The notes below the pieces were generated by a model, which saw only the letters and a program-made list of their open reading frames with translations, made no database searches and was not told the DNA's origin. A stretch of DNA of 64,000 nucleotides from positions 8,742,001 through 8,806,000 of the forward strand of contig OZ004612.1 in the NCBI GenBank assembly GCA_963924565.1, given 5' to 3'. Source of the stretch: Ascidiella aspersa. Its lineage: Eukaryota. Of this stretch, positions 35,101-45,380 are shown one piece after another. Position 1 is the stretch's first letter. Each line of letters starts with the position of its first letter. Both the position numbers and the translations under genes were made by a program.

Positions 35101-36992
35101 TAACTGACAGTTACCTTACCAAGTGAAGGTGTGTGCAGCACATTAGAAGCATTGTCTCATTCCAAGTAAACAGTTACAAGTCAAGTTTTACTACGAGTCA
35201 TTGCAATATTGAAGAAGGCCAATTTCAATTGTTGGTATCAAAATTTACCCTTTCAAACATTAAAGTTAGATAAATCAATAACCTAAAACTAAACATGTAG
35301 CAAGCAACTCACTTTTTATATGCAGATTTAGAAAAAAAACTAATCAATCACTTAATTTGCAACAGAATTTGTGTAATAGACTCGATTACTATTCCCAGTG
35401 TTCCGATTGCCAAATCACGTCTTTTTAAACGAGAAAATTATATAAATGAGGCAAAATTAATTAACTTAAATTATAACCATTTGTTCAATTAACTTGACTT
35501 GGATTTTACCAACTTGAAAAACTGTATTCTCTCAGAATTTTTATTTTTATTCATTCTACAGTGTATTCCTTGACTCGGACTAGCGGCATTTTAACCAATG
35601 TGATTGTATACCAATACTGGAAATTCTTTCTATAGGTTTTTGTCAGTTTATTAGGTTGGAATGTAAACACATGGTATTTTTATTTTCTACGCCAGCCAGA
35701 CGACTTTATTCACATATCTCAATGTTATCTTTTAACTTTGCAGATTGTCGGCGTCGCCTGGAATCCCGCCACGCTAGGAACGCCCCAAATATGTGAACAC
35801 GACGTCGATAGGTATTACAAGGCCCACAGTGCATTGTTAAAAGTGGCCCGACGCAAAGACATACAGGTCATTAAACTTTAGGTAAAATTATTTAAAGCAA
35901 ATTGCTAAATAATATGTGGATAAATAATTGATTTATCGGGCACTGATGTAATGCATGTGTTCCATTTCAAGGTTTAAAATAAAAGAATACAACAAAGGGC
36001 AATATGGAAGATAATATTATTATGTATTACGTCTCGTTTAATTGTTCTCAAAACTGTCTGTGTAGGTATAAGATATCAGTATCGCGTTGATGATTTAAAG
36101 CAGCACTGGAAAAATTTGTCATTCTCCAACTATAGCCACTCTTTAACTTATATTTTTTCATTTCGTGTCACAATACCGTGCAAAAACTTTTTCTTGTGTC
36201 GGGAACAGAAAATAAAATAAGATTAATTTAACAGTTTCGCTTCAAACTGGAAAGGGGTGACTTACTGGTGTTCAACAACCGAAGAATGGTTCACGCAAGA
36301 GATGCCTTCCAAATTAACGGCGGAAACAGGCACTTGCAGGTATTTCTATCTAATTAGAATTTACCGAAATGCCTGACTTAATTGTGGCTATTGCTTTAGT
36401 TAATCATTTGTGATATAAGTGTTGTAGGGCTGGATCCTCGTAGGAATAGATCACATTTGATAAACACGTATTTGTGTGTATCTTTTCTTGAATAACGTGA
36501 TTCTGTAAACCTTTTTAAAGTGAAGTTCCTGACACGCACAGAATGCAGCAAGCATTGGCGCATGGTTGTTTTTTGACTAGCTTCCCTCTGAGTCTGTATC
36601 TCAGCTGACAAAGCGACGGTCCCGGTATGACCGAACATCGTGAGTTCGAAGCTCACTCAAGGCCATAGTTGTTTTTCTAGCCTGGCTTGCTTGCATCATT
36701 GGTCGACATATTCGGTTAGTCTGCGATGGTTTCAGTGTATTGCGATATAAGTAAGCCCTTAACGTTAATCAAAAGCTACTTCAGAAGGGTTAGAGATCAG
36801 AGTTAACGAACGCGTATGTGTGTGCATCGTTCGCTAAGTGTCCCCTGGGCTCAAAACCTTAAAGACTCCTGTATCAATTCGCAGGGCACCTATATGAAGC
36901 TGGATGACTGGAAGTCGAAATACGTGACCTTGGCAAAGAGGCTCGACAAAGATGTCACCCCTCCTAAAATAGGAAACAACTCGTCGTTTTAG
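32109..36992 (+). CDS. Gamma-butyrobetaine dioxygenase (BBOX)-like, copy 2
   Basis: Exons 32109-32194, 32787-32920, 33180-33399, 33815-33890, 34019-34063, 34350-34477, 34873-35068, 35744-35866, 36235-36339, 36885-36992. Same motifs as copy 1, and it retains NVAYT. Confidence 0.92.
36440..36835 (+). mobile_element. tRNA-derived repeat (paralog of 26200-26595)
   Basis: Same tRNA-like core, GTGAGTTCGAAGCTCAC at about 36640-36656. Confidence 0.65.
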
Positions 36993-37538
36993 TTGATAAA
37001 CGTTTCATAAAGAATGTTGCAGAATTTTATACCGAGAGATTTGTCTTTTTTATTTGATTTTTTTTGGATTTTCGTGCGTAGTTTTACGAAAAGACAAAAC
37101 ATAGCTATAGCTTATTTAACGACTGACTCGGCTATAGGCTAAAACATGTATATATATCGGTAAATGTTTAACAAGATTAACAACGGGTTATTTTTTATTA
37201 TGATGTAATAATACAGCCCTATTGAATTATCCTTGAATCTAATGTATCGCGATCTAGCTACAATCCAGTCGACAACAGATCAGTTAATTCTCGGGCAGTC
37301 GCTTCTCTTCATATTATATTCACTCTGCTGCTGACGAAACATTCAACTATTATATTGCAACACTTGTGCTGCAGGCTGTTTTTGTTATGCTGATATTTCG
37401 ACTGTAAATACATTTTGCAACATACACGCATAATTGTCGGGTCAGTTTGTTTATTTTTGACCTAATAGAGTCAGATACTATCGGTCCGTGGCCAGTGTTA
37501 CCGTGTACAAATATACACCAATATTGCAACCACCGATA

Positions 37539-37981
37539 TGCGTATCTTTGCATAACCGACACGGGTTGAATGGAATCTTGCAGCGGTTGCTCTTCAGTCA
37601 CTTTCCCAAAGGAAACTTGCTGGCGTGCGGCATCATTCCGTCAAAGGAAATACCGCGGGGTGTCAGGCAGTCTGTAGAAACGCCAGGAGCTTCGCGTTTT
37701 GCCTACGTCGTTAACAAAAGGAAGCCACGCGCAGGAAATGATGGTCTCGCCAAAGCTGACGACGACTAACTGGAAGACGACGGTCAGCCATCATGGTAAT
37801 CTGACCGCCTTTGGACACCTTCTTCCAAGACGTAGACGTGCTCGAAATTCGAGTAAGGAGTTATCTCCATTCTTGCCAACGAGCCCATTCCAACCACAGC
37901 GTACGCGCAAGGAGGTTGCGATTTCAAGTTAACACAATACCGCACTATGATATGCATTAGCTCTGTGTTGCGCTTGCTGAT
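37539..37981 (-). pseudogene. Relic C: isolated, frameshifted nucleotidyltransferase core of the NTase-TPR family
   Basis: Matches 41416-41879 and encodes ISKRNTELMH..PPCAYAVVGMGSLARMEITPYSNFEHVYVLEEG (catalytic D changed to N). A deletion/frameshift follows DYH. Confidence 0.9.
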
Positions 37982-39134
37982 CACTAAACAGGTATTATTA
38001 AAATTACGTATTTTGAAAGACGTTTCGAATATCGCTACTCGTAAACATTAGCATGTTTAAAAGCGCTGAACGATGTTAGAATTTTATTTTGTGGCTTAAT
38101 CGTCATTAAAATTGGATTAACTTGATTGTATTGCGAGTGCAAAATGTCAATCATAATCTCACCTTTCGTGTCGAATTACCAACGATACGATTTTCTGCAA
38201 TGCACACATAGCGAATCTATTTTCTTTGTACCTAGTGTTAGTAGGTTCACGACACTTTTCAGGTCAGATTTTCAAATTCTCCTGTTTTCCATGCTACTGT
38301 TTTACTTTTTGTTGTAGTAGCTACTGTAAAGGTGTATTTTCATGAGCAGACAAAGTAGTAAAAAAACCTAATCGGAATGTGGGCGACAAAAATAACAAAG
38401 TTAAGGTAAAAGGCGTTGTTAGGCAAAGTAAACATTCAAAATATCAGTTCAATTCAGTAGGATATTGTTTTGGCTGCCTTTTGACCAAAGCACTTTACTA
38501 GTGTAATTTGATTGTTATCCTTTTATGTAACACGCATTTCACGTTATTATTCGCAAATAATATAATTTTGTGTAGTCATAAATGCATTTGTGTAAACATC
38601 GTATAGAAATATAGATTAGCCTAATACAAACTTCCGATATGAGCAGGCAAAATATAACAGAATATACATTTTTTAGTTTATGTTTATCTACTGCTAAAAT
38701 GTCTCATATGCATTATTTTTACAACATTGGTTTCCACGGTAATTATTTTACAAAACTTTTGTCAAAAATTGTACAATATACTGACCGACACAATATGAAT
38801 TTAACCGTCGAATTGTTGTTTACAAAAGCCTACTGCAGGCCAACGTTTACGTTGTTGTACGCAGTTGACAATCCAGATTGAATAAGCGTTCGTTTCAAAT
38901 AAATAAAACATATTACATTTTAGAAAATAACCATTACAAAGATTGTAAAAAGGACACAACGGGTATGCGTGGTATAATTAATTTTTTTAAATTTTTATGT
39001 TTTATGTTTTACTCTATTTAAAAGAGTAACACCTTTAACTTTAATAATATTATGTATAGTTGTTGGACGTAAATAAACGTAGTTTAAATACAAAATGAAG
39101 GTAAAAATTATTATAGAAAAAACACAGATACGTA

Positions 39135-42100
39135 TTATAAATCAAAAATATATTTGAGGAATACAATGATTAGTAGTAGCAACACGCTACAAAACAGCGT
39201 TTTATTAACTTGTTTTATTTTCCCTTCGGCAGCGCCTTTCTTTATTACTTCTCGCATAAGCATATCTTGTGTTTCATACAAGCTTTGACCACAATCAGCA
39301 ACTTCGATTTTCCACCTCGGATTGTTTGTGTGCAAAAATATCTTTCGTGCTCCGGCTAAGCAACCTTGGGCTTTCGGAAGTTTTTCCGTTTGCAGATAAC
39401 ATTCTCCCAACATTTTATTAAGCATGGCGACATCTGGATCTTTTTCAGCCTTCCGAGTAAGCAATAGTAACTCCTTCAAGACCGGTTCAAAACATGTCAA
39501 GGCTTGTTTAAAGTACCGACGACGTAAATAGCTGGTGCCTATTGCCAAATCACATTTCATGCAAAACTGCCCAGACTCTGGATTGTGTTTTTTCGCTTTT
39601 TCGCACAGCTCTAAGCTTTCCTTCCATTTGCCAGTTTTCCTGTAGCAGGTGGACAAATTCCAAAGGCATCTGGACAACTTCACGCGATCTTTGTCCGTTT
39701 CAATGTTCATTTGTGTTCGCAAACGAAGCTCAGCGTTAAATTCGATCAAGGCCTGAGAGTAGCGTTTAAGGTAGTGAAAGACGCTTCCAAATACTGACAA
39801 ACAAGTGGCAGAAAAATGATTGGTTTTGCGTTCTTCCGCTTTTGTTTTCATCAACTTTCTTGTCGCATCCTTCGACATATGCAAATCTTCTAAAGAGCAG
39901 TCGTCGTCAAAATACCGTAAAGTCTGGCGGCGAATTAGCCTTTTGTCGGGTTTCAGGTTGTTTCTTAAATCGAGCTGCTGAAGGCACTTTTCCAAGTGAT
40001 CAAGAGCTTCTGCAAAGTTACCGCGATCAAATTCCATTTTGCCGCGCATTGCTGAGCAGAAGGCTCGGAGAGTAACGATGTCAAATTTATGATGTTTTGT
40101 TCGCAGCAAGATTTCGAAAGCCGCTTGATATTGCTTCTCCGCTTTTTCTACTTGCTTCATTCGCCAATGACAGTTCGCCAGTTCCACATAGAATGTTGCG
40201 ACGTCGAAATCGTTGTTTTCGTTGCATGACAACTCTCGACTGAACTGCAAACAGGTCTCCCAATTTTGGAGAGCACTTTTGTACCTGTTCAGTTGGAATT
40301 CGCTCAACGCAATTGAACTTAACGTTTCCATTCTCGAGCGCTTTTCGTCTTGACCTAAACTTGACAAATGAGTTTCAAGGAGCTTTAAAGCCAACTTGTG
40401 TTGTCCAAGTTTTTGGTGGGATATCGATTCTGCATACTTGACACCTGGTTTTACCAAATTTAGGTATTCGTTTATGGACGGTTTAAGTAGACGCCACAAG
40501 TATTGCAACAAGCCAGGGTATAAAACATTATTAGTTAAAACCTTCTCAAACTTACCCATTTCATAATAGCATAGTAAATAACCAAGAAAATAGCAAACTT
40601 GGTTAAACACAACTCCTGTATGTTCTAGAATTTGATAGGTATGGAAAGCTTGGTCGAACTGTTTCAACTGAAGGTGAAATAGGCCTTTAAATAAATTTGC
40701 CACGAGCCACTTTTCACCTTCGGAAGAGGTACAGTGATTTTTAAGCCGCTTTGTAAATTTGTTTAAGCATTTCTTGTATCGCCCTAAATGAAGTACAACC
40801 ACCAGTTCTATAACGTAATCGTTCACTGCTTTATGCTCCACCCGAAGCCGGTCACACATGAGCCTCTGAAGATCAACGGCAGCTAAACAAAATCGAACAA
40901 CATTTTCTAACCCAAAGTGGCGCAGTAGATATTCTCGGAAGCGATTTTCTCCTTTCGCAGACGTTTCAAAGATGTCGACCTGTCCTTTGCTTACCGCGTA
41001 GTGTCTCAAGCGAATTTCGCAAGCCAAGGCAAGCGCAAGGATCAAGTCTTTTGCGAGGCTTTCCGGTAAATACTCTCTACTTTTCAACTCTTTCAAACGG
41101 TCGAAAGAGGAGGAAGACGAAAAACACTCTTCGAATCCAAGGTACGGTAGGAACACGGTAATGGTTCGATAAACATACTGCTTGATGTTAATGGACGGGT
41201 CAGTCAATCCTTTTGAAGCAAGTTGAAAGAAATCAAACTTTTTAAGGTCGTCTAGAATTTGCTCTTTCCAATAACTGCTGCCAGCGTTTTTTGAAACAAG
41301 TTGGTTTGCTCCATCGCGATACTGATCATATATTTCCTGATGGCCGCTGACGAAGCAGGTTTTGTTCAAGATCGCAGCCAAATGACAGTCATTTTTCTTA
41401 GTTTTTGACACATCTGCGTATCTTTGCATAACCGACACGGGTTGAATAAGTTCTTGTAGAGGTTGCTCTTCAGTCGCTGATTTGCCCAGAGGAAACTTGC
41501 TGGCGTGCGGCATCATTCCGTCAAAGGAAATACCGCGGGGTGTCAGGCAGTCGTAGAAACGCCAGGAGCTTCGCGTTTTGCCGACGTCATTAACAAAAGG
41601 AAGCCACGCGCAAGGAATGATTGTTTCGCCAAAGCTGACGACGACTAATTGGACGACGACGGTGAGCCATCGAAAGTACTCCCGAACTTCGTGGTAATCT
41701 GACCGCCTTTGGACACCTTCTTCCAAGACGTAGACATGCTCGAAATCCGAGTAAGGAGTTATCTCCATTCTTGCCAACGAGCCCATTCCAACCACAGCGT
41801 ACGCGCAAGGAGGTTTCGATTTCAAGCTGACACAATACTGCACTATGTTATGCATTAGCTCTGTGTAGCGCTTGCTGATTTCTTCCTGCACACGTTGGAC
41901 GATTTTAATTCGTTTTTCTTCTTCCGTCCATGGCTTCAACTGGGCCAAATAGGTTTTAGTCATATCTCTCATGGCATGTATATCCTTCGTAAAACACAAA
42001 ACCTTTTTCCGAAATTCGACAAGAGTGGTATTGCAGTTAGCGATGCTGAGAATATGCTCACAAAGCTCGTCGAAATCATGTTGCAAGTCAATAATACTGT

Positions 42101-42323
42101 CGGGTGCTCTTACCAGGGCAGCCTTTAACAGGATTGAACTCCGGATGAGCGATATCTTTTGATCGCGTCCTTGGACATTGTCAGCGTTTCGGCGAAAAGC
42201 TTTTCCGAGCCGATGAATTACCTTTGCAGAGGCCTGCTTGTCTTTTTCTCGCCCGTTTACAAAGCAAACGGACTTTAGATCGTTTGCCAGTGCTTCAACC
42301 TCTCCTAAAAAGTCCTTAGCCAT
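39135..42323 (-). CDS. Intronless 1062-aa protein: GlnD/GlnE/DUF294-like nucleotidyltransferase + TPR array + C-terminal tail anchor
   Basis: Single long ORF. Pol-beta-superfamily motif GMG181S182LARMEITPYS192D193FE195 with a candidate third carboxylate in SFD268G. DUF294_C-like helical region (INIKQ..SFDRLKEL..LACEIRLRHY). Multiple TPR-like repeats (IALSEFQLNRYKSALQNWE, LANCHWRMKQVEKAEKQYQAA, FGSVFHYLKRYSQALIEF, LSTCYRKTGKWKESLELCEKA, LGECYLQTEKLPKAQGCL). Hydrophobic C-terminus LFCSVLLLLIIVFLKYIFDL. Confidence 0.9.
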   Translation of the reverse strand: MAKDFLGEVEALANDLKSVCFVNGREKDKQASAKVIHRLGKAFRRNADNVQGRDQKISLIRSSILLKAALVRAPDSIIDLQHDFDELCEHILSIANCNTTLVEFRKKVLCFTKDIHAMRDMTKTYLAQLKPWTEEEKRIKIVQRVQEEISKRYTELMHNIVQYCVSLKSKPPCAYAVVGMGSLARMEITPYSDFEHVYVLEEGVQRRSDYHEVREYFRWLTVVVQLVVVSFGETIIPCAWLPFVNDVGKTRSSWRFYDCLTPRGISFDGMMPHASKFPLGKSATEEQPLQELIQPVSVMQRYADVSKTKKNDCHLAAILNKTCFVSGHQEIYDQYRDGANQLVSKNAGSSYWKEQILDDLKKFDFFQLASKGLTDPSINIKQYVYRTITVFLPYLGFEECFSSSSSFDRLKELKSREYLPESLAKDLILALALACEIRLRHYAVSKGQVDIFETSAKGENRFREYLLRHFGLENVVRFCLAAVDLQRLMCDRLRVEHKAVNDYVIELVVVLHLGRYKKCLNKFTKRLKNHCTSSEGEKWLVANLFKGLFHLQLKQFDQAFHTYQILEHTGVVFNQVCYFLGYLLCYYEMGKFEKVLTNNVLYPGLLQYLWRLLKPSINEYLNLVKPGVKYAESISHQKLGQHKLALKLLETHLSSLGQDEKRSRMETLSSIALSEFQLNRYKSALQNWETCLQFSRELSCNENNDFDVATFYVELANCHWRMKQVEKAEKQYQAAFEILLRTKHHKFDIVTLRAFCSAMRGKMEFDRGNFAEALDHLEKCLQQLDLRNNLKPDKRLIRRQTLRYFDDDCSLEDLHMSKDATRKLMKTKAEERKTNHFSATCLSVFGSVFHYLKRYSQALIEFNAELRLRTQMNIETDKDRVKLSRCLWNLSTCYRKTGKWKESLELCEKAKKHNPESGQFCMKCDLAIGTSYLRRRYFKQALTCFEPVLKELLLLTRKAEKDPDVAMLNKMLGECYLQTEKLPKAQGCLAGARKIFLHTNNPRWKIEVADCGQSLYETQDMLMREVIKKGAAEGKIKQVNKTLFCSVLLLLIIVFLKYIFDL

Positions 42324-42332
42324 AATAAACTT

Positions 42333-43443
42333 CTGCCAAACAAAGTGTTAAATAAAATTTAGTCGCGTATGCATTATTAGCTACTCGCATTGGATTTATT
42401 CTTTTAAAAAATTCAAACTTTACAAGCGTAACATTTATTTTATAGGATACAGTAATTGACATTAATCGATTTTAGAGGAACCAATTTAAAAGCTGCGCAA
42501 TTCAATACAGCGTACTTATAACATCCGTGTACTGTACGTGATTTCTGGATTTAAGCATGCTACCTAACTTTGCGTAACCTGTGATGCCACAGAAAGTCTA
42601 TAGTACGAAAATACGAATCTGATTGACTTGCTACGCATATTGCAAACAGTCATAAACATCACAGGAAATCGTACATTCTACATGGATTTAATCGAAATCA
42701 TTATCCAGTTAAACATATAGCTTTGTATTACTTTATTCAAGATGACAAACTGCTGGGCAAATCTATACTTTTGTCGAAGAAATATATATTTTGTTTGGGG
42801 GGGAGGGGGGGGGGCATGTCCTTGGCCCCACTATAGCAAATTTTTGAATTACAAACAGGCATGTAGCCAACCATGCTAAACTTGAAAGTACATTATATCC
42901 TTAAGAAAACTGATGATAATATCTAGGTGTTTATACCTAGCTGTGTTGCTAATTGATTTTTATGTTACAATTGAATGGTCGCAGAAACTTTAGCATAAAA
43001 TTATACTCAGATTTTTTCTAGCCTTATAGGTTGGGCCTACTAATATTTTGCCTTACAGCAAAGAGGCGGTGTTTAATTTTGTTAACTTTGCTACACCTGG
43101 CCAACTATCTCAATACGAAAGCAATACATTTAAATTCCCTGATAAGCAACAAACCAAAATATAACAGTTGCTAGACTTGATTTTAGTAACTTTAGTTGAC
43201 TTACTGCTTAGTGTATTCTGAATCACATATTGTCAAAACAAGGAAACCAAAACGAGAACCACTGGCGTAAATTACTATTCATTAGTCCTGAACACTCACT
43301 TGTCACCGTCACAACAAAGAAGCCACGTAATTATCCTATGTCATACACACAACAAAATACACTGCCTTCATAGATAATAGGTACAGACAGAGCTGTAGTT
43401 TCGTCACGCTACGCAGGGCGTGAACATTTCAGAGATGACGTCA
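42333..43443 (-). promoter_or_regulatory. Candidate 5'-UTR intron and CRE site for the NTase-TPR gene
   Basis: Minus-strand acceptor tttgtttggcAG lies 9 nt before the ATG (42333-42334). Candidate donor GTGAGT at 43299-43294. Palindromic TGACGTCA at 43436-43443. Confidence 0.35.
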
Positions 43444-45099: not shown

Positions 45100-45380
45100 T
45101 CAAAATACAGCTTCAGGAGGGTTAGATCACTTTCGCTGAACCCATATGCATGCGTATCTTTTAAATAATATGGTACTACAGATCCCCTTTAATGTGAATA
45201 GGCTTGTACTAAATAAATGTAGCAAGATTTGGCACATGGTTGTTTCTCAACTCGCTACGGTCACGGTTTGATTGGAGGTCGTGAGTTCGAACCCCGCCGC
45301 CGGCTAGTTGTTTTTCTAGCCTACCTAGCTTGAATTATTGATTTTTGGTAAGTCTGAGATGGCTTCCGGTGTTCTCAAAT
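45100..45380 (+). mobile_element. tRNA-derived repeat copy
   Basis: GGAGGTCGTGAGTTCGAACCCC plus the shared flanks (CTTCAGxAGGGTTAGATCAC; TTTTTCTAGCCT; AGTCTGAGATGG). Confidence 0.6.

Follow-up and report, generated by a model that had tools for sequence, protein, structure and literature searches.

A single-exon gene of Ascidiella aspersa and its place in a large animal family joining a DrrA/GlnE-like nucleotidyltransferase to tetratricopeptide repeats

The window analysed here, a stretch of 64,000 nucleotides of Ascidiella aspersa DNA (contig OZ004612.1, positions 8,742,001 to 8,806,000), carries at 39135-42323 on the minus strand one unbroken open reading frame (ORF) of 1062 codons, a single exon, in which a nucleotidyltransferase (NTase) of the pol-beta superfamily is joined to an array of tetratricopeptide repeats (TPRs) and a predicted membrane anchor. 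The second longest ORF anywhere in the window reaches 162 aa, which would fit the 4-11 exons that the initial annotation gave every other gene of the locus. As about 6.5% of random codons would be stops at this base composition, the chance of 1062 open codons is arithmetically about 1e-31, and the frame cannot be a chance product. This confirmed the uninterrupted 3.2-kb coding sequence (CDS) reported in an initial annotation of the window, and the residue numbering of its catalytic motif was likewise correct, since VVGMGSLARMEITPYSDFEH fits exactly with G181, S182, D193 and E195 and also with R185, E187 and S192. The features of the gene and its surroundings are as follows, numbered along the window.

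39135..42323, minus strand: complete single-exon CDS, 1062 aa plus stop; in the diverged allele contig X2, the sole indel listed within the CDS keeps the frame
41934..42323, minus strand: N-terminal helical domain, aa 1-130, five helices modelled by AlphaFold with a predicted local distance difference test (pLDDT) score mostly >90; C20, E26, L59 and R72 invariant in 50 homologs
41289..41933, minus strand: pol-beta-type NTase core, aa 131-345 (Pfam DUF294, PF03445), matching the DrrA/GlnE fold with Z 19-20
41739..41789, minus strand: catalytic motif G179-M-G181-S182-LARMEITPYS-D193-F-E195, with residues invariant in homolog alignments
41520..41522, minus strand: D268 in the invariant block GISFDGMMPHA, candidate third metal-binding carboxylate, invariant in 50 homologs
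40914..41288, minus strand: helical KNTase_C/HEPN-like substrate-binding domain, aa 346-470 (Pfam DUF294_C, PF10335), with K381, R386 and R438 invariant
40434..40913, minus strand: helical linker, aa 471-630, helices modelled with low to medium confidence, the fastest-evolving part in recent paralogs
39225..40433, minus strand: TPR array, aa 631-1033, about 9-10 repeats of the kinesin-light-chain/NPHP3 type (Pfam TPR_12, paired helices in the model)
39138..39218, minus strand: predicted C-terminal transmembrane tail anchor, aa 1036-1062, ending in KYIFDL, with the highest hydrophobicity of the protein and a modelled helix; a tail also occurs in the paralogs L011 and L030
37536..37981, minus strand: decayed partial copy of the NTase core (pseudogene fragment), duplicated from 41412-41879, marked by direct repeats and found by the genome search too

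The Pfam scan placed DUF294 at aa 142-220 (29.2 bits, cut-off 21) and DUF294_C at aa 364-443 (26.1 bits, cut-off 22.5), the latter bearing out the helical domain that had been noticed behind the NTase. TPR_12 was detected with an E value of 6.8e-22, accompanied by TPR_2, TPR_1 and TPR_10, with strong matches from about aa 630 to 990. These repeats match TPR structures of kinesin light chains (E 2.5e-5) and appear as paired helices in the AlphaFold model, as expected from the TPR-like array proposed initially. A match to SidM_N stayed below threshold (17 versus 27 bits). No F-box was found by Pfam in the protein; aa 1-130 form a different helical domain, which is also covered in one bacterial copy from the Holosporaceae (L056, profile positions 8-523).

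Alignment of 50 full-length homologs showed G179, G181, S182, D193, E195, D258, D268, K276, K381, R386 and R438 to be invariant, so that the intact GS...SDxE motif and D268 pointed out by the initial annotation are kept throughout. A separate alignment of 27 domain sequences keeps G181, D193 and E195 without exception, and S182 and D268 almost without. The pol-beta signature hG[GS]-x(9-13)-D-x-[DE] with a third carboxylate is represented by G181-S182, D193-F-E195 and D268, where D268 rather than D258 is the putative third carboxylate. When an AlphaFold model of aa 131-470, computed from 27 homologs (pLDDT 77, predicted template modelling score 0.79), was compared with the PDB by Foldseek, DrrA ranked first (E 3.8e-7), followed by the N- and C-terminal NTase domains of E. 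coli GlnE (2e-5). VIA-align gave Z 19.9 over 261 aligned residues for DrrA, Z 19.8 over 273 residues for the N-terminal and Z 18.6 over 267 residues for the C-terminal domain of GlnE. The next fold class, aminoglycoside nucleotidyltransferases, reached Z ~7, MNT-associated HEPN toxins Z ~6 in the helical half only, cGAS-like CD-NTases Z 3.1-3.5 and Cid1/TUT7 Z ~3. The C-terminal half of the model aligns to the helical part of DrrA (Z 8.6) as well as to the HEPN toxins. Because Z values of 18.6-19.9 compare with ~7 or less elsewhere, the placement of the enzyme in the GlnD/GlnE/DUF294/DrrA branch, outside the usual animal NTase families, is well supported. Pfam, which gave no Mab-21, OAS or PAP match in the protein, Foldseek and VIA-align agree on it, and the earlier assignment to this branch and away from cGAS, OAS and TENT enzymes is therefore upheld. 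An NCBIfam scan returned TPR noise and the GlnD models PRK00227 and PRK03381 at 10-13 bits (cut-offs 799 and 631); as these equivalog models score so far below cut-offs of more than 600, the protein is orthologous to neither GlnD nor GlnE.

Adenylylation of a tyrosine in a target protein is the reaction of all three nearest enzymes of known structure, and because of this chemistry the window protein would be expected to transfer a nucleoside monophosphate (NMP) to a protein. The same gene and fold could also serve another chemistry, namely synthesis of a nucleotide signal, or tailing or capping of RNA or tRNA, which we regard as unlikely. Although pol-beta NTases are chemically versatile (CD-NTases, MenT, AbiEii, Hailong HalB), all three of the top structural matches are protein adenylyltransferases, and CD-NTases and terminal uridylyltransferases align with Z ~3 only. 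Likewise, the C-terminal half resembles HEPN domains, with HalB, an oligodeoxyadenylate synthase, at Z 5.8, and the generic bacterial DUF294 family is without an established substrate, a literature search having given no paper on its function; yet the pair of DUF294 and DUF294_C is the arrangement of GlnD, GlnE and DrrA (PMC3710099). The protein is quite probably an active nucleotidyltransferase, and there is about an even chance that its substrate is a protein.

The top Kyte-Doolittle windows of 18 residues start at residues 1038-1045, ahead of KYIFDL, with a peak of 2.76 for the window from residue 1043. Nowhere but in its last 25 residues is the protein strongly hydrophobic, and AlphaFold modelled a terminal helix at 1036-1061, in line with the hydrophobic C-terminal helix of the initial annotation. 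The protein thus shows the sequence pattern of a tail anchor, a single hydrophobic helix no more than about 30 residues from the C-terminus together with the lack of a signal peptide or another transmembrane segment. Within the genome, the tail occurs in the window gene, in its sister L011 and in the more distant L030. L012 also ends in a hydrophobic tail, which may be an accident of the reading frame because its near-identical neighbour L013 has none. Copies of a large tandem array end in a basic ...KLARRGLKSKK in place of the tail, and three tail-bearing proteins of another lineage form a clade of their own. As the tail has been kept between two paralogs that share only half of their residues, its conservation argues for a function.

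The size of the family became apparent when the enzyme domain was compared in six frames with the assembly that the window belongs to (308.6 Mb, 75 contigs), giving 98 matching stretches corresponding to ~88 loci on at least nine contigs. In about 64 loci the frame runs without interruption for 840 aa or more, and nearly all paralogs are single open frames, mostly of ~1000 aa; the family as a whole is therefore intronless, and the gene is not the singular intronless oddity or unique domesticated import that it had been taken for. Approximately 50 loci lie in a tandem array at C6:0.72-2.66 Mb (717727-2660836), on the same chromosome as the window gene and ~6 Mb away from it. Most array copies are 1010-1030 aa long, and some pairs are nearly identical (e.g. 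L019 and L021). Several paralogs are truncated or contain stops. The window gene is an isolated, divergent copy, and its nearest relative is L011 on contig C7 (identity 53% within the domain, 49% across the aligned core); both are sisters with a support of 100.

The partial duplicate at 37536-37981 (~450 bp, 1.2 kb downstream of the gene) has 88-97% nucleotide identity to 41412-41879, and small deletions, stops and a change of SDFE to SNFE mark it as decayed. A decayed NTase duplicate beside the gene indicates that the locus has been duplicating in place. A repeat search revealed no terminal repeats flanking the gene, only this local partial duplicate and short SINE-like repeats, by which carriage on a transposon was ruled out. 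Two direct repeats of 79-86% identity (36613-36701 and 45254-45340), 8.6 kb apart, flank the gene region; with their tRNA-like GTTCGAA box they are probably copies of a short interspersed element (SINE). Elsewhere in the window, the minus-strand ORF pairs 45989-46471/60513-60995 (160/160 aa) and 48190-48666/62146-62634 (158/162 aa), each ~14-14.5 kb apart, suggest a tandemly duplicated multi-exon gene downstream.

Selection was analysed by the Nei-Gojobori ratio of nonsynonymous to synonymous substitution rates (dN/dS) among 23 recently duplicated array copies. Values of 0.41 for the N-terminal domain, 0.26 for the NTase core, 0.31 for DUF294_C, 0.63 for the linker and 0.62 for the TPR array describe an enzyme under constraint that is coupled to a recognition module evolving faster, a pattern compatible with positive selection and no proof of it. 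Among the array paralogs L015-L050, dS itself differs about two-fold, with 0.17 in the NTase core versus 0.35-0.47 in linker and TPRs. For the window gene, indels are numerous in the 3' flank of a contig of X2, which stems from another sample and is 3.4% diverged, and the sole indel listed in the CDS is an insertion of 3 nt. The gene is intact and under coding constraint.

About 6% of one RNA sequencing run of the same species was read and contained four reads at the locus, i.e. one pair within the CDS (41243-41636) and another 100-500 nt upstream of the ATG, both oriented as for minus-strand RNA in most stranded libraries. Contigs of X2 are confined to 38315-42334 and those of X3 to 39410-42517, apart from one short repeat-like piece; X1 covers everything. 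The restricted extent of X2 and X3 looks transcript-like and is no proof, and the evidence for transcription is thin. The 5'-untranslated-region intron suggested by the initial annotation is matched by an acceptor-like tttgtttggcag ~10 nt upstream of the ATG, but no spliced read was found among the RNA reads at the locus, where no joint had enough reads. A C-rich homopolymer, ccccccccctcccccccc, lies at 42795-42815 on the minus strand, ~480 nt upstream of the ATG and near one of the RNA read pairs.

These data also bear on the view that the family is a selfish or neutrally drifting tandem array and the window copy a decaying relic without function for the organism, which we consider quite improbable. 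The very high copy number in tandem arrays, with several copies broken, the decayed duplicate downstream and the very low RNA coverage would fit such a relic. Nevertheless, the 1062-codon frame and every invariant residue have been kept despite ~49% identity to the nearest paralog, the enzyme core of the array copies is under purifying selection (dN/dS 0.26), indels of the diverged allele avoid the CDS or keep its frame, and neither terminal repeats nor other transposon hallmarks were found around the gene.

Searches of a 5.8-billion-protein set recovered at least 811 homologs of the full protein and, for the enzyme domain alone, 1474 cluster representatives at E <= 1e-3, 359 of them at E <= 1e-30. 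Named animal members come from tunicates (Ciona intestinalis, Clavelina lepadiformis and Styela clava), three Branchiostoma species, where some are labelled KLC1, and the octocorals Xenia sp. and Dendronephthya gigantea; most other matches are ENA or JGI sequences without a species name. Database labels of the animal members read 'uncharacterized' or are mistaken (KLC1 or TTC28-like). One JGI metagenome contig encodes a homolog of 1280 aa as the sole long ORF in 23.8 kb and is therefore eukaryotic DNA. With this contig and an eukaryote-like GC content, a bacterial origin of the metagenome homologs P0002-P0004 and P0047 was dismissed.

Family-specific motifs, looked for in the genomes of 185,579 species of bacteria and archaea, were found at five loci, the best three of which belong to Rickettsiales, namely Holosporaceae bacterium 'Namur', an uncultured Rickettsia and a metagenome-assembled genome (MAG) of the Rickettsiaceae, whose copy shares its contig with EF-Ts and an M23 peptidase. 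The Rickettsiales ORFs have the NTase plus TPR_12 architecture of the window protein. At least 11 NTase-TPR copies (including L051, L056, L059 and L061-L067), in ORFs of 1200-2270 aa, were counted in the 1.9-Mb 'Namur' genome, and one of its NTase-TPR ORFs adjoins a pentapeptide-repeat protein of 1153 aa. In the order to which 'Namur' belongs, 12 of 301 sampled genomes gave matches and four were multi-copy; first-look candidates numbered 41 in one multi-copy genome (G120) and 18 in another (G262). A search starting from the Holosporaceae protein led to Parachlamydiaceae and several Neochlamydia strains, with an added F-box. The initial annotation had asked whether the nearest homologs are those of bacterial intracellular symbionts or are spread patchily over animals, and both turned out to be true, with Rickettsiales and Chlamydiae on one side and tunicates, amphioxus and octocorals on the other.

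Other forms were seen as well. In the Rickettsiaceae MAG SGMAG-38 (L053:3323-7184), the gene is split into an NTase ORF of 480 aa and an ORF of 798 aa, the latter beginning within DUF294_C and running on into TPR and ankyrin repeats. Such a split would mark either a pseudogene with a frameshift or a true two-part form. The NTase was further observed with PARP and ankyrin repeats (sources without a species name), with a methyltransferase (Parachlamydiaceae MAGs) and with an OTU domain (Bacteroidota MAG), in proteins P0352, P0354, P0299, P0329 and P0367.

A branch of 4.0-4.5 substitutions/site with 100% support splits generic DUF294 proteins from all TPR-fused forms in the enzyme-core trees. One clade, also with 100% support, unites the copies of the window's genome with those of tunicates and species-unnamed eukaryotic sequences. 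The bacterial proteins form another clade (Shimodaira-Hasegawa-like approximate likelihood ratio test 97) in which two Xenia sequences are nested, and amphioxus and Dendronephthya lie between the tunicate-type and bacterial clades at no resolved position. The base of a site-heterogeneous tree is without resolution. An LG+F+G4 tree and approximately unbiased (AU) tests were run on reduced data sets. In the LG+F+G4 tree the outgroup attaches weakly inside the bacteria, a rooting that would favour transfer from bacterium to animal; an outgroup position outside the bacterial clade was not rejected by the AU test (p 0.28), and a bacteria-only clade excluding Xenia was marginally rejected (p 0.042).

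From these sequence trees, exchange between intracellular bacteria and animals, in either direction, is likely at the level of the family and has probably occurred more than once. The position of the Xenia copies inside the bacterial and not the animal clade suggests a separate transfer; both copies (P0302 and P0327, Xenia sp. Carnegie-2017) are located on a 21-Mb contig. As the window gene sits deep in the well-supported tunicate-type animal clade, any transfer would be ancient and concern the family, and we read the gene as having descended vertically within an old animal clade. Of the horizontal acquisition proposed in the initial annotation, the exchange between bacteria and animals is thus retained on the strength of the shared architecture, but the ~88 paralogs and the deep animal clade speak against a lone or recent import. 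A recent acquisition from bacteria, or a bacterial contaminant in the assembly, might be suspected because the gene is intronless, its enzyme family otherwise mostly bacterial and relatives of the same architecture are close at hand in Rickettsiales. However, the gene lies inside a chromosome-scale contig of 33 Mb, and one DNA run spans it and both flanks continuously. Its GC content of ~0.43 compares with 0.34-0.40 in the surroundings and 0.26-0.35 in the bacterial copies, the paralogs are distributed over at least nine contigs, the gene belongs to an animal clade supported at 100% and remote from the bacterial one, and the metagenome homolog likewise sits in eukaryotic DNA. On the basis of chromosome context, continuous coverage, GC content and paralog distribution, contamination or recent transfer is excluded, and we consider it extremely improbable.

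How the window protein relates to known systems can be judged at the level of fold, architecture and family pattern. The AMPylation domain of DrrA/SidM from Legionella pneumophila (PDB 6yx5, 3nku) is the best structural match with a root-mean-square deviation of 4.0 A, at a sequence identity of 13-15%. Both proteins have the G-S...D-x-[DE] core followed by a helical domain, and DrrA acts as an effector in the eukaryotic cytosol, like the bacterial relatives of the window gene; it carries guanine nucleotide exchange factor and lipid-binding P4M domains, whereas the window protein is host-encoded and has TPRs and a predicted tail anchor. GlnE and GlnD belong to the same Pfam clan and have the same arrangement of NTase plus helical domain, and in UniRef the homologs from Branchiostoma and Clavelina bear the name 'Protein-PII uridylyltransferase N-terminal domain-containing protein'. 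The HD, ACT and second NTase domains of these enzymes and their nitrogen-regulation context are not found in the window protein. In the ESM Atlas, the clusters closest to the enzyme domain consist of generic bacterial DUF294/DUF294_C proteins (scores 0.92-0.95), and the two generic DUF294 proteins examined (L076, L077) are without TPRs.

The closest counterpart in architecture is the NEX2 family of Neochlamydia, with 50 members combining an F-box, DUF294, C-terminal TPRs and sometimes an OTU domain (Domman et al. 2014; PMC4209131). One tested NEX2 member has a functional type III secretion signal (PMC4209131), from which it likely acts in the eukaryotic cytosol. NEX2 proteins and the Rickettsiales 'tetratricopeptide repeat proteins' have a DUF294-type NTase followed by a C-terminal TPR_12 array, as in the window protein, and lineage-specific expansion is common to all (50 in Neochlamydia, at least 11 in 'Namur' and ~88 here). 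Rickettsiales and Neochlamydia proteins are 30-38% identical to the animal copies and differ at the N-terminus, which is an F-box in most NEX2 members and a helical domain in the animal proteins. A tail anchor was not seen in the bacterial copies examined, although no search aimed at it was made. A literature search yielded no paper describing an animal NTase-TPR family; as found, the architecture is published only for chlamydial effectors, and the pol-beta superfamily as such is known. The animal cGAS/OAS/Mab21 and TENT/Cid1 enzymes belong to this superfamily and share its catalytic logic, with a fold similarity at background (Z ~3-3.5). A likeness in pattern only exists to invertebrate TPR receptors of the NOD-like (NLR) or signal transduction ATPase (STAND) type, i.e. 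large tandem arrays, a fixed module with faster-evolving repeats and many intronless copies. Unlike these receptors, the window protein contains no NACHT, NB-ARC or other STAND NTPase, death-fold or TIR domain according to Pfam.

Taken together, the ORF is likely a functional, vertically inherited member of a large uncharacterised animal family, in which it would act as a membrane-anchored protein-NMPylating enzyme. The protein would reside on the cytosolic face of an organelle membrane, held there by the predicted tail, and would move AMP or another NMP from an NTP onto a side-chain hydroxyl of another protein, with the TPR array selecting or sensing this target or binding a regulatory ligand. 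Target binding by the TPRs and placement at a membrane are suggested by the architecture. The family as a whole would couple a fixed enzyme to a variable recognition module, which fits host-microbe conflict or surveillance; that it serves such a purpose is, by analogy, a tentative proposal.

Several observations weigh against this reading. The literature search found no enzymatic, localisation or target data for any family member. A sequence-only PDB search with the domain profile gave nothing meaningful and did not reach DrrA or GlnE, so the link to these enzymes stands at fold and Pfam level. The loop bearing D258 and D268 has a pLDDT <50, and because of this low confidence D268 is a putative metal ligand. 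The tail is absent in 98% of homologs, occurring in 5 of 262 database homologs of at least 600 aa, and an anchor is predicted from hydrophobicity alone. No region of the array copies exceeded a dN/dS of 1, with the highest 60-codon windows at ~0.8, and the difference in dS may reflect gene conversion homogenising the enzyme core, or misaligned repeats. The four RNA reads from ~6% of one run are the whole direct RNA support, and for X2 and X3 no library type is recorded. Finally, a PADLOC scan gave one insignificant match and no defence family.

A further step from the membrane-anchored NMPylating enzyme would be that tunicates, amphioxus and some cnidarians possess a large, diversifying class of cytosolic sensor-enzymes, in which the TPR array senses a microbial or danger ligand and switches on a DrrA/GlnE-type AMPylase. 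Tail-anchored versions would then guard organelle surfaces, the family would be intertwined in its evolution with AMPylase-TPR effectors of Rickettsiales and Chlamydiae, and host copies could be captured effectors turned to defence, or the bacterial copies mimics of host proteins. We hold this extension to be doubtful. The support for an immune or receptor role comes from the pattern of expansion and the faster-evolving TPRs, and such a role, drawn by analogy, is speculative.

The interest of the finding lies chiefly in the family. In animals, AMPylation of proteins is ascribed to FIC-domain (FICD) and SelO enzymes, and to our knowledge GlnE/DrrA-type adenylyltransferases are regarded as bacterial; here, an enzyme of this type is fused to TPR arrays and present in dozens of copies in invertebrate chordates and octocorals. 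The same architecture in expanded, effector-like families of Rickettsiales and Chlamydiae makes a concrete case for gene exchange between endosymbiont and host, and the animal family offers a handle on the role of the chlamydial NEX2 proteins. The window gene, single, isolated and divergent, with a predicted membrane anchor and one sister paralog to compare, is a convenient representative. If the sensor-enzyme interpretation were true, protein NMPylation would be an innate-immune signalling chemistry that, as far as the literature search showed, has not been described in animals.

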